Source: Macrostomum lignano
Lineage: Eukaryota
DNA length: 64,000 nucleotides
NCBI GenBank assembly: GCA_002269645.1
Contig: NIVC01000011.1
Coordinates: 248,001-312,000 of the forward strand
Reading direction: 5' to 3'
The translations under genes were made by a program, and so were the position numbers. Shown piece after piece: positions 57,815 through 61,159 of this stretch (position 1 is the first letter of the stretch; every line of letters begins with the position of its first letter). Below the pieces are notes generated by a model. The model was not told the origin of the DNA. It ran no database searches and saw only the letters and a program-made list of their open reading frames with translations.

Positions 57815-60800
57815 TCATCGTTTCGCACTCGACGCTGTCACCAATGAAGTCGCATCTTTCGGCGGCAGTGGAGGCGCCTCCTTGCCGTCTCTCGGTTCTT
57901 CGACTTCTTCATAAACTTCTTCTTCCGTGTGGCCAGCCTGCTGCTGCTGATGGTACACCGGATTCTTGTAACGAGCTGTTTGTCGCTCTGTTGGCGGCAG
58001 GAGCTGCGCTTGCTGAGCTGACGCTAGGTTTGACAGCAACTGCTGCTGCTGCTGCTGCTGCTGCTGCTGCTGACCTCTGTAATTTTTGACAGGGTTAAAG
58101 AGTTTGTTAGTTGTAACGTGCATAACGAGGGTTATAGCCTGGTTGTTAGCCTGGTAACTAAAAGGTCGGGAGTTCGATTCTCGACCCACTCGGAACAATT
58201 TGTATCCTTGAGTAAGACACTTAACTCTGCATTGCTTCAGTTCACCCAGCTGTAAAATGGGTGCCAGCATTAGCTGGGGTAATTGAGGCTGCGTGTGGCG
58301 ACCCCCCAGTCCAATTGGACTTGACAGCCGTACGCAGCAATAGATGCGGCTGAGCTGTCGGTTGCACATTCGCCCATTATGGCAAGTGTTTTAAATTAGA
58401 ATATTATAATTTTTAACGTTACTACTACTAATATTACTACTACTACTACTAATATTGAGTTTAATGACCGACAAATATCTGAACATTCTCACCCGTAATC
58501 TTCTAGCATACTGGACGGATCTCTCCGGCTGATGATGATTTGTTGACGCCTTTGACAACGCACGATGATAAGTCCAAGCAGTCCAATGACTATGACAGCA
58601 ACTCCGGCCGCTGCTATGATCAAAATCTGAAGTGTGTAAAGCAAATAACGAGATCTGTTGGATGTCAATTGATCGATACTTGGAATAAAAATATAGACGA
58701 TGTCCCTTGATTTTAATTTTGGTAAAAATATGTTGATCTGTGGTAAAAAATTTAAAAGGGAACTCTGTTTTTGGGCGTTGTGTGGTAGAATTTTGGTCTT
58801 ATGAAGCGACCCCCTCTGTTTTAGACGTGAATTTACTTACGAAAAGCGCTACTTCTCATTTCTGTATCAGATTGCACGATTCACTCACCGATTGGCGGCT
58901 TCCAACTTGAAACCCGGCAATCACACCTTCGCCGTTCTCATTTGTGCAGCCAGTAATTTCTGAATTGTGGAGGACATTAGATTTCAGGTGTAGCTATTTT
59001 TACAAGCTCGGGGTTTCCAAATTTAGGGGGTTGTAGCCTAGTGGTTAGAGCGTCTGACCCACGACTGAAAGGTCGGGAGTTCGATTATCGACCCACTCGG
59101 AAAAAATTGTGTCCTTGAGCAAGACGTTTAACTCTGCTTTGCCTCAGTTCAGCCAGCTGTAAAATGGGTGCCAGCATTAGCTGGGGTAATTGAGGGACCC
59201 CCAGTCCTTGGACTGAACAGCCGTACGCAGCCTTCAGATGCGCCGCGCAATAGCTGCGGCTGAGCTGTCGGTTGCACATCTGCCCATTAGGGCAGGTGTA
59301 ATAAATTATTATTATTTATTATTATTATTCCAATAAATTAGCAAAGTATATTATGGCTTTAATTTTTATGGAGTTTTTAGAAATGCCGAAGTTAAAGGCT
59401 GGTAGGCGCAGAAATTTGATCTTATCGGTATTAAATTTCCGGTTTCAATGCAAGTGTAGCTGCAGTTAATTGCCCTCCATTTTGACACAAACTTTCTGTC
59501 GACAATGCTTATCACTGAATCGCACAGCGCAATAACTGTCTCACCTAGCGATTTTTCGCACCGCGTGTCGCCCCTCTGGCAGCTTGGATAAACCGGCTCC
59601 CCAGTGCACTGGGTGCTGCAGCGCCTACCGTATAGACCTGGGAGACACTGGACATCGATGGTCAGCGTTAAACTGCAAATTGTGACGTGGGTCTACGAGC
59701 GTATGATTACCTACAATGCCATTGTTGCTGCTCTAGTATTTTAGCAGTCCAGGTACACTACGGGGCCACAATTTCAGTTTTAATAATTGACTCTTCACTT
59801 ATGCAGCCGCCCACCTGACGTATTTGTTGATTGGAGTGAAAAACAACTCCTTCGTTACGGAGTTGTTCCATCGAGTCGGGATGGAGGGCAGCAGCCGATG
59901 GAACTCCTCAGTGATTTCGCCGATGGTCTGGGGCACTGGGTCGAACGCGTCATTGTCCTCAATTTTAACACGAATCAGGAGCAAGTCCTGTGTTAGGAAA
60001 CATTAAAAGTGTGCTTGGAGCGCGCGCATTGGAAATGAACATGCTTACGATATGACTAAAAATACGTCGAAACAAACTCAACACACTTACGGGCAACTCT
60101 TGAAGCAGACGGAACTCTGTAGTGAAAAATTCCCCATTTAAACTGACCACGTTGTCGAAGACATTCGAGTTTCTTGACTGCTCAAATCTGAAATAGATAG
60201 ATAGATAGATAGATAGATAGATAGATAGATAGATAGATAGATAGATAGATAGATAGATAGATAGATAGATAGATAGATAGATAGATAGATAGATAGATAG
60301 ATAGATAGATAGATAGATAGATAGATAGATAGATAGATAGATAGATAGATAGATAGATAGATAGATAGATAGATAGATAGATAGATAGATAGATAGATAG
60401 ATAGATAGATAGATAGATAGATAGATAGATAGATAGATAGATAGATAGATAGATAGATAGATAGATAGATAGATAGATAGATAGATAGATAGATAGATAG
60501 ATAGATAGATAGATAGATAGATAGATAGATAGATAGATAGATAGATAGATAGATAGATAGATAGATAGATAGATAGATAGATAGATAGATAGATAGATAG
60601 ATAGATAGATAGATAGATAGATAGATAGATAGATAGATAGATAGATAGATAGATAGATAGATAGATAGATAGATAGATAGATAGATAGATAGATAGATAG
60701 ATAGATAGATAGATAGATAGATAGATAGATAGATAGATAGAAAGATAGATAGATAGATAGATAGATAGATAGATAGATAGATAGATAGATAGATAGATAG

Positions 60801-61159
60801 ATAGATAGAAAGATAGATAGATAGATAGATAGATGCTCAGTACTCACGAATAACCTTGTGTTCCCAATTTAACGTGGAAAACGGGATCGCACAGGCCTCT
60901 GTTCTGCTCGCACGGCATTCCTGTCTCAGACAGCACCTGATGTGGATTCGAGTAGTTGGACAGTCTTATCCGAATGATGGCGCCGACTTTCGTTGACTGC
61001 TGCAGTGTAGGTGGAGGATTTCGGATGCGATTTTTGACGAGTTAAGTATTGGAATTATTGGTATCAGAATTTAATTATTGTAACTAACAAAACGCTTACC
61101 TGAGAAGAGGAAAAAGTGCTACTCAATAATAGGAGCAGAGAAGTCAATACAACCAGCAT
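57815..61159 (-). CDS. Delta/Serrate-like single-pass membrane protein (signal peptide, C2/MNNL-like domain, 6-Cys DSL domain, TM, Tyr-motif tail; no EGF repeats), 8 exons, 358 aa
   Basis: Exons 61159-61100, 60999-60848, 60187-60091, 59987-59815, 59672-59545, 58959-58889, 58626-58493, 58076-57815. All introns are GT-AG with matching phases and there are no internal stops (1077 nt). Signal MLVVLTSLLLLLSSTFS; IRLSNYSNP..GMPC...CDPVF; DSL-like CLPGLYGRRCSTQC...C...C...C; TM ILIIAAAGVAVIVIGLLGLIIV followed by RCQRR. Confidence 0.8.
58127..58400 (+). mobile_element. tRNA-derived CORE-SINE, copy 3 (degenerate head), antisense in DSL-gene intron 7
   Basis: B box GAGTTCGATTC; CORE TCCTTGAGTAAGACACTTAACTCTGCATTGCTTCAGTTCACCCAGCTGTAAAATGGG; 3' region shared with the other copies. 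Confidence 0.88.
59027..59330 (+). mobile_element. tRNA-derived CORE-SINE, copy 4, antisense in DSL-gene intron 5
   Basis: GGGGTTGTAGCCTAGTGGTTAGAGCG head, CORE segment and (TTA)n tail. Confidence 0.9.
60193..60834. repeat. (GATA)n microsatellite, ~160 units, forming nearly all of DSL-gene intron 2
   Basis: Direct reading; only two GAAA interruptions. Confidence 0.99.

Follow-up and report, generated by a model that had tools for sequence, protein, structure and literature searches.

The stretch of DNA considered here (the window) comprises 64,000 nucleotides of the Macrostomum lignano genome (assembly GCA_002269645.1, contig NIVC01000011.1, positions 248,001 to 312,000 of the forward strand), and positions are counted from its first letter. 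On its minus strand, at 61198-57815, maps BOX15_Mlig019247g1, which very probably is an intact, transcribed gene for a 358-amino-acid type I membrane protein, member of a family that descended from the receptor-binding head of the Notch ligands Delta, Serrate and Jagged. The family is so far known from M. lignano only.

The coding region was rebuilt independently, by three-frame translation followed by explicit assembly, as eight minus-strand exons (61159-57815), all with AG acceptors and GT donors as applicable, with every intron of the GT-AG type and with compatible phases (for the seven introns in order 0,2,0,2,1,0,2). The coding sequence (CDS) of 1077 nt corresponds to 358 amino acids and ends with a stop codon at 57817-57815. 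An earlier note on this DNA, made from the letters alone, had assembled eight phase-compatible exons of a 'cryptic' gene and had pointed out that the sixth cysteine of a DSL-like segment is gained only upon splicing to exon 6. Those exons are reproduced exactly and the cysteine, Cys208, is indeed encoded by exon 6, while the gene is not cryptic, as GenBank already annotates it as a hypothetical protein. The exons and domains are arranged as follows.

61160..61198, minus strand: in-frame 5' leader, SHLFKPAIEYNPK, inside the 'partial' GenBank CDS, 13 residues ahead of the 358-residue model
61100..61159, minus strand: exon 1, start codon ATG and hydrophobic signal peptide MLVVLTSLLLLLSSTFSSSQ, ending in phase 0
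60848..60999, minus strand: exon 2 (152 nt), first C2/MNNL-like strands, an N-x-S sequon (N35) and the Cys50/Cys57 pair
60091..60187, minus strand: exon 3 (97 nt), C2-like core strands
59815..59987, minus strand: exon 4 (173 nt), further C2-like strands, among them LLLIRVKIEDNDAFD and ...TPINKYV
59545..59672, minus strand: exon 5 (128 nt), a linker strand, then the first five cysteines of the DSL-like module (Cys1 to Cys5)
58889..58959, minus strand: exon 6 (71 nt), the last DSL-like cysteine, Cys6 (C208), then a juxtamembrane stalk of ~19 residues
58493..58626, minus strand: exon 7 (134 nt), transmembrane helix ILIIAAAGVAVIVIGLLGLIIV, then the basic stop-transfer sequence RCQRRQQ
57815..58076, minus strand: exon 8 (262 nt including the stop codon), cytoplasmic tail
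59672..60984, minus strand: stretch over which the C2-like domain (aa 26-161) is encoded, in exons 2-4 and the first codon of exon 5
58946..59671, minus strand: stretch over which the DSL-like module (aa 162-208) is encoded, in exon 5 and the beginning of exon 6

The GenBank protein PAA94371.1 (371 aa, 'hypothetical protein BOX15_Mlig019247g1, partial') consists of the 13 leader residues followed by exactly the 358 rebuilt residues, and its locus (GCA_002269645.1, NIVC01000011.1) matches the window with 0 mismatches in 16,186 bp. The in-frame leader is probably 5' untranslated region. The annotation of this assembly, Mlig_RNA_3_7, is a genome-guided transcriptome built with StringTie/TACO from RNA-seq and de novo transcripts, with TBONE applied for the gene ends (PMC5730564), and the BOX15_Mlig models in GenBank are taken here as derived from it. 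As this annotation is transcriptome-derived, the eight-exon product devoid of epidermal growth factor-like (EGF) repeats most likely mirrors assembled RNA rather than gene prediction alone.

The predicted product consists of a signal peptide, a region of ~135 residues with C50 and C57, a block of six cysteines, the ~19-residue stalk, the transmembrane helix and a tail of 108 residues. It has the hallmarks of a type I single-pass protein, namely a hydrophobic N-terminus, one transmembrane segment of 22 residues (aa 228-249, window 58626-58561, hydropathy maximum of 3.0 at aa 228-248) and a basic stretch after it. UniRef names near-identical copies of the protein 'C2 domain-containing protein', and its paralogue 'DSL domain-containing protein'.

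EGF repeats are missing from the locus as well as from the protein. A regular-expression scan of all six frames of 56900-62500, introns and flanks included, recovered neither an EGF-like six-cysteine pattern nor a C-x-G-aromatic-x-G-x-C tail, and Pfam EGF did not match the window protein. The sixth cysteine of the DSL-like block is separated from the transmembrane helix by ~19 residues only, and the transcript-derived paralogues are likewise without EGF repeats.

HMMER, run exhaustively against 1.84 billion representative proteins, retrieved one distant full-length relative, PAA93509.1 (E 1.3e-11; termed P0006 here), again from M. lignano. It is encoded, together with the near-identical PAA78946.1, by BOX15_Mlig022023g1 and Mlig016699g1, located on contigs NIVC01000025.1 (L001) and NIVC01000659.1 (L003) of GCA_002269645.1. 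The ectodomains of P0006 and the window protein share 34% identity across 166 aa (E 5e-20), the layout of signal peptide, C2-like region, DSL, transmembrane helix and tail is the same, and all eight extracellular cysteines as well as the N-x-S sequon are common to both, with a cysteine spacing of 8-3-8-7-6 in P0006 vs 8-3-8-6-8 in the window protein. The gene structures correspond as well: L001 also consists of eight exons, its seven introns agree in phase with those of the window gene, and it has a first exon that also codes for the signal peptide only and ends in phase 0, exons 2 and 3 of equal length (152 and 97 nt), and the same phase-1 intron between DSL Cys5 and Cys6. The family has two divergent members, and of each there are several near-identical copies or alleles.

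Downstream of both near-identical paralogue copies lies a GSHPx gene in opposite orientation, and the copies differ by 15 synonymous and 11 non-synonymous changes. The resulting synonymous (dS) and non-synonymous (dN) divergences of 0.052 and 0.013 give a dN/dS ratio of 0.24, which, judged from these coding sequences, indicates purifying selection within the family. Two copies at a dS of 0.05 fit a genome of which, as reported for M. lignano, a large fraction is duplicated.

Relatives outside M. lignano were found neither in the word-indexed homologue searches nor among the 1.84 billion representatives, canonical Delta or Jagged proteins never reached E<=10 with the family profile, and a metagenome scan with the family alignment gave 259 pattern matches, 0 of which were confirmed. 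Two candidate relatives were discarded. P0005 (1729 aa; E 7e-17 against the DSL-like segment) consists of ~28 near-identical repeats of ~60 residues with periodic cysteines and looks like a translated tandem repeat that cysteine-rich queries match spuriously, and a tblastn match within the window (25489-25265, E 0.063) is riddled with stops and does not qualify as a paralogue.

The six cysteines of the DSL-like module, at positions 170, 179, 183, 192, 199 and 208, are spaced 8-3-8-6-8, compared to the canonical 8-3-11-7-8 verified on the PDB sequences of DLL4, DLL1, JAG1, JAG2, fly Delta and Serrate. They align column for column with those of six solved ligands and the paralogue, the loop between the third and fourth cysteine being three residues and that between the fourth and fifth one residue shorter than in the canonical domain. 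Invariant across the ligands and both paralogues are all six cysteines, Y-G and one further glycine. Neither paralogue has the sequence R-P-R-D-D-x-F-G-H, which is invariant in six of the seven solved ligands and near-invariant in the seventh, and the C3-C4 loop of both is short by three residues. Of the consensus YYG...F-C-[RK]-x-R-[DN]-D-x-F-G-H with the subsequent GWxG, the paralogue retains YYG and F-C-R only; the window protein, the loop of which reads TGEPVYPS, has in addition lost the phenylalanine before Cys3 (replaced by Q) and GWxG before Cys6. The missing residues correspond to F199, R201, R203, D205 and F207 of the Jagged-1 DSL domain, which reportedly contact Notch in the work of Cordle et al. 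from 2008; this numbering agrees with the PDB-verified sequence.

The gathering threshold of the Pfam DSL family PF01414 (24.2 bits) is passed by the paralogues P0006 (25.8 bits) and P0007 (28.1 bits). For a comparison at the profile level, the C2 and DSL parts of seven ligands (human and rat DLL4, human DLL1, fly Delta, human JAG1 and JAG2, and fly Serrate; structures 5MVX, 4XLW, 4XBM, 7ALK, 4CBZ, 5MW5 and 7ALT) were aligned from the PDB, and this alignment was compared by hhalign with the profile of the two-member M. lignano family. Over the full length, the comparison gave a probability of 92% (E 6.7e-7) and 155 colinear columns, with a score of 47.6 against 13.6 +/- 2.7 (maximum 21.4) for column shuffles, that is 12 standard deviations above them. 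The DSL part alone reached 96.2% (E 2.2e-9), and cross-comparisons of C2 against DSL by hhalign gave no match. P0006 on its own matched the ligand profile equally clearly (hhalign 96%, E 4.2e-9; HMMER 31.3 bits). As the window protein itself is borderline and P0006 is clear, the window gene owes its DSL assignment transitively to this paralogue. The searches of the PDB by sequence and of Pfam gave no relevant match for the window protein, and weak ones to an ADAM10 cysteine-rich region, SCIMP and a phage baseplate were regarded as noise.

The alignment of family and ligands begins with the first beta-strand, AIIRIRLSNYSNP...CEQNRGLCDPVFHVKL in the family vs GVFQLQLQEFINERG...CEPGCRTFFRVCL in the ligands, covers the first MNNL cysteine pair and the strand of the 'LIIEAW' type, and extends to Cys5 of DSL. 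An N-terminal signature of first strand, x-N-x-x-G, cysteine pair and F-x-V-x-L is thus present directly upstream of the DSL-like module, and the product of exon 2 aligns with the start of the DLL4 MNNL region. Support for this C2/MNNL signature is moderate because the C2 part alone (score 25.8, P 0.0012, against 12.3 +/- 2.5 and a maximum of 21.4 for shuffles) aligns over its first 36 columns only. Neither Pfam MNNL (PF07657) nor C2 matched the window protein at E<=10 or the paralogue at E<=1, and from the four MNNL cysteines the first pair only (C50, C57) is retained, the second being missing in both paralogues.

A fold model complements the profile comparison. With a six-row M. lignano alignment, AlphaFold2 arranged residues ~5-150 as eight beta-strands with a predicted local distance difference test score (pLDDT) of 55-74, at a mean pLDDT of 54.9 and a predicted template-modelling score (pTM) of 0.50 for the entire model. 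Searched with Foldseek against the PDB, this low-confidence model gave 35 matches at E<=1e-3, nearly all C2 domains (for example E-Syt1 C2A at 5e-6, PLC-delta1, otoferlin, cPLA2, NEDD4 and PKC-epsilon). Ligand structures were among them (Jagged2 C2-EGF2 at 7.9e-5 over 185 columns, Jagged1 at 1.7e-4, DLL4 at 5.7e-4 over 183 columns) and provided the longest alignments, which extend into DSL. In this model, aa 26-161 are likely folded as a C2-type sandwich.

With respect to the earlier note, the proposed architecture of signal peptide, C2/MNNL-like region, six-cysteine DSL-like module and transmembrane helix without EGF repeats is supported by the transcript-derived model, the Pfam DSL match of the paralogue, the profile alignment and the fold model. 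The placement of DSL directly on the membrane helix is borne out by the frame scan, the short stalk and the identical transcript-derived model, and the two cysteine spacings given for the module and for canonical Delta were both correct. The 'complete' DSL domain is complete with respect to its cysteines, whereas the loop is shortened and RPRDDxFGH and GWxG are absent. Similarly, the C2/MNNL assignment is backed by a C2 fold, in a low-confidence model, and by profile colinearity with the ligands, and is left without a Pfam MNNL or C2 match; the Pfam comparison proposed there as a check came out divided, with the window protein failing MNNL and DSL and the paralogue passing DSL.

The cytoplasmic tail is encoded by exon 8 and carries the following elements.

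58072-58040, minus strand: Q11 run
57970-57953, minus strand: YKNPVY
57913-57902, minus strand: acidic YEEV
57874-57857, minus strand: PPLPPK

Past the juxtamembrane stretch, the tails of the two paralogues can be aligned only in three short motifs, which follow one another in identical order. The first is YKNPVY in the window protein vs FRNPVY in the paralogue, together [FY]xNPVY; the internalisation signal of the LDL receptor is FDNPVY. The second is an acidic YxxPhi motif, EEEVYEEVEE in the window protein vs DDDAYDELEE in the paralogue (there also given as AYDELEEV), while the classic SH2 motif of the Src family is pYEEI. About ten residues further on follows PPLPPK vs RPLPPTP, which we take to fit the class II and the class I consensus for SH3 ligands, respectively. 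By these motifs, the tail looks like an endocytic and adaptor-docking tail and not like a known Notch-ligand tail. Tails of canonical ligands are ubiquitylated by Mindbomb/Neuralized, which drives their epsin-dependent endocytosis; the window tail contains four lysines (309, 337, 345 and 357), and what it conserves is NPxY, YxxPhi and PxxP instead. The tail of the paralogue is longer and without polyglutamine. The Q11 run is encoded by a perfect (CTG)11, as read on the plus strand (window 58040-58072), and its length varies between copies, with Q9 in the near-identical P0001.

The gene is embedded in a repeat-rich environment, the window overall being characterized by long microsatellites, copies of short interspersed nuclear elements (SINEs) and short exons. 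Intron 2 consists mostly of a 642-bp (ATAG)n/(GATA)n microsatellite (window 60193-60834, 99% pure, ~160 copies), which mimics long 'LSIY' open reading frames (ORFs) in reading-frame lists. A tRNA-derived, SINE-like repeat of ~280 bp occurs in four copies (59025-59300, 58157-58389, 50948-51245 and 14977-15167) of 72-83% mutual identity, two of which are located in introns 5 and 7 of the DSL-like gene. The head of the copy at 51.2 kb scores as a tRNA in Rfam (29.9 bits), and ARAGORN, run on the gene locus only, detected no tRNA in the two intronic copies. The presumptive promoter region contains a perfect (AG)34 (window 61440-61507), which precedes the annotated start of the transcript by ~240 bp.

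Upstream and on the same strand lies the 3' end of a gene for a 1092-aa cadherin-domain protein (window ~63812-64000, minus strand, continuing past the window end), and directly downstream, again on the same strand, about six C-type-lectin-like genes follow in tandem.

57131-56391, 53327-52629, 48381-47674, 40745-40047, 35758-35531 and 30346-29628, minus strand: C-type-lectin-like genes

The nearest of these is a single-exon ORF (57131-56391) for 247 aa with its own ATG and signal peptide, which scores 21.9 bits with Lectin_C, slightly below the cut-off. Gene models of near-identical copies in an older assembly obscure this arrangement. The UniProt entries P0001, P0002 and P0003 skip exon 6, shift the frame in exon 5 or fuse neighbours, with P0001 and P0003 joining the DSL-like gene to the upstream cadherin tail and the downstream lectin; they are considered prediction artefacts, as the transcriptome-derived GenBank model and the gene structure of the paralogue agree with the eight exons. 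Equally, the lectin part of a 609-aa UniProt model that joins the DSL-like gene with a C-type lectin is explained by the separate downstream gene.

What might such a protein do? Tentatively, and from its motifs, a surface receptor or modulator that cycles through endocytosis is favoured over a classical Notch activator; taking identity and mechanism together, a probability of roughly 0.5 is assigned to this explanation as a whole. Among the functions suggested in the earlier note (cis-inhibitor or decoy, lipid-binding receptor, ligand of a partner other than Notch), those of the receptor type are favoured by the tail motifs conserved between the paralogues, while classical trans-activation of Notch is unlikely because the head is held near its own membrane and EGF1-2 and the DSL contact loop are missing. 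With the loss of the F-C-R-P-R-D-D-x-F-G-H contact loop, of GWxG and of the EGF1-2/DOS repeats, which confer high-affinity binding, the protein would not be a classical trans-activating ligand. Rather, it would act as a surface receptor or modulator, the head of which is positioned within a few nanometres of its own membrane. The C2-DSL head would bind a lipid surface or a partner with EGF repeats, possibly Notch in cis, and the tail would mediate internalisation through PTB/AP-2 adaptors and couple the protein to SH2/SH3 proteins. Phospholipid binding has been described for ligand C2 domains (PMC5538765).

A more far-reaching and rather improbable proposal is that the Notch-ligand head has been co-opted as a receptor that senses a lipid surface or an EGF-repeat partner and signals in reverse through its tail without Notch-type proteolysis, or else that it serves as a minimal cis-regulator of Notch. 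The lipid surface might, for instance, be anionic phospholipid that a dying or adjacent cell exposes, and the tail might recruit PTB adaptors via [FY]xNPVY as well as an SH2-SH3 pair of the Src type via pYEEV and the SH3 ligand ~10 residues on.

Several observations weigh against the descent from a ligand head and the endocytic receptor function as favoured here. With respect to descent, the window protein alone has no match to Pfam MNNL, DSL, C2 or EGF even at E<=10, reaches 45% only with the ligand profile in hhalign (P 2e-4, 30 columns), and scores 8.4 bits with HMMER --max vs 6.5 bits for the highest-scoring of its own 200 shuffled versions. From the single sequence, AlphaFold2 gave an unusable model (pLDDT 31), the model from six rows is of low confidence overall, with a pLDDT of <40 in the DSL part, and the C2 matches in Foldseek are generic and not specific for ligands. 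With respect to function, BLAST supports similarity of the tails only from the juxtamembrane stretch to NPVY (E 2e-4), and short linear motifs can arise and persist by chance. Searches of literature and supplements returned no mention of Mlig019247, Mlig022023 or Mlig016699, hence no expression data, and no data on localisation, binding or phenotype of these genes. In the DLL4-Notch1 crystal complex of Luca et al. from 2015, contacts are said to be made by C2 and DSL only, and the EGF-less head could therefore in principle bind Notch.

The last point leads over to the most serious competitor, a stripped-down Notch ligand, which is considered possible although less so than a receptor or modulator. 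Notch activation needs endocytosis of the ligand, which the NPxY/YxxPhi tail would provide, and both modules of the ligand tip are kept in their native order with all DSL cysteines, the paralogue still having YYG and F-C-R. The protein could then be a DSL-only activator that works with a separate co-ligand of the DOS type, comparable to the proposed joint action of LAG-2/DSL-1 and OSM-11 in C. elegans, or a cis-inhibitor or decoy like DLL3. Ten DSL proteins of C. elegans are without DOS motifs, and the N-terminus of APX-1 has been reported as sufficient in vivo (PMC2504490). Against such a ligand stand the loss of the phenylalanine before Cys3, of the whole RPRDDxFGH loop and of GWxG in the window protein and a tail unlike known ligand tails, as well as the weak binding reported for MNNL and DSL in the absence of EGF1-2 (PMC2725086) and the reported requirement of MNNL, DSL and EGF1-3 altogether (PMC4810162).

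The other explanations question the gene or its kinship and are all quite improbable. That the true transcript contains EGF exons, or is part of a larger fused gene, is suggested by the older-assembly models with cadherin tail and lectin (P0001, P0003) and by the 'partial' flag at the 5' end of the GenBank CDS, and is largely refuted, as the transcriptome-derived model begins 39 nt upstream of the ATG and signal peptide and ends at a stop, no frame of 56900-62500 contains an EGF pattern, the lectin gene begins at 57131 with an ATG and a signal peptide of its own, and the same eight-exon, EGF-less product is encoded at two paralogue loci that are independent and differ in their neighbours (Paf67, GSHPx). 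Equally improbable is a convergent or chance likeness, the protein being an unrelated cysteine-rich beta-sandwich membrane protein. The window protein has no Pfam match, its HMMER score of 8.4 bits compares with 6.5 for the best shuffle, and its top Foldseek matches are generic C2 domains, yet the paralogue clears the curated DSL threshold and alone reaches 96% in hhalign (E 4e-9), the alignment of family and ligands is colinear over 155 columns at 12 standard deviations above shuffles, and the longest Foldseek alignments are with Notch ligands and run into DSL. Least probable of all is that a Delta-type gene has shed its EGF exons and persists as a decaying remnant without function. Such a remnant would be in line with the degenerate DSL, the lineage-restricted distribution and the introns full of SINE copies with a microsatellite of ~640 bp, but the reading frame is intact over eight exons with canonical splice sites and present in the transcript assembly, the paralogues, at an identity of only 34%, have both kept the architecture, the tail motifs and all eight cysteines of the extracellular part, and the sister gene pair has a dN/dS of 0.24.

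Structural studies trace the tip of the ligands that is essential for binding Notch to C2 and DSL, with a contribution of EGF1-3, and the family described here would represent a natural, evolutionarily maintained membrane protein of C2 and DSL only, an isolated head freed of its EGF stalk and equipped with a different tail. Should the protein still touch Notch, it would be a minimal ligand or cis-inhibitor of use for questions of force dependence and stalk length; should it not, a ligand head would have been co-opted into an endocytic or phosphotyrosine receptor. The significance is limited by the restriction to one species and by the fact that the labels 'C2 domain-containing' and 'DSL domain-containing' are already public; the pieces have been flagged automatically in databases, and unusual DSL architectures are known from the nematode DSL family, DLL3 and the Capsaspora DSL receptor tyrosine kinase (RTK). 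As M. lignano offers RNA interference, in situ methods and transgenesis (PMC5730564), the question is directly testable.

In comparison with known systems, the protein shares with the canonical ligands (Delta/DLL1/DLL4 and Serrate/Jagged1/2), which bind Notch EGF11-12 and trans-activate the receptor, the type I topology and an N-terminal region, putatively C2 (MNNL), with a six-cysteine DSL right after it. It differs from them in having 0 instead of 6-16 EGF repeats, a head ~19 residues from the membrane instead of a long stalk, one MNNL cysteine pair instead of two, and NPxY/YxxPhi/PxxP motifs in place of the known features of ligand tails. With respect to the tail, the LDL receptor and CED-1/Draper/MEGF10 are single-pass proteins the tails of which pair an FxNPxY signal for PTB/clathrin adaptors with a YxxPhi or SH2 site. 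With unrelated ectodomains, this is a functional analogy via short motifs only.

DLL3, which is a cis-acting inhibitor and not an activator, keeps EGF repeats and MNNL and has an unrelated tail. Its likeness to the window protein lies in a degenerate DSL that was overlooked by domain searches (PMC12166595). In C. elegans, LAG-2, APX-1 and DSL-1 to DSL-7 are DSL proteins without a DOS/EGF1-2 unit that act together with the DOS-only OSM-11, a precedent for ligand functions split between proteins, although LAG-2 and APX-1, unlike the window protein, keep EGF repeats after DSL (PMC2504490). The 'Delta-like' RTK of Capsaspora owczarzaki belongs to another lineage, carries EGF repeats and a kinase and is without MNNL, but in this protein, too, DSL, in the form of two domains, is located inside a signalling receptor and not in a Notch ligand (PMC4810162).

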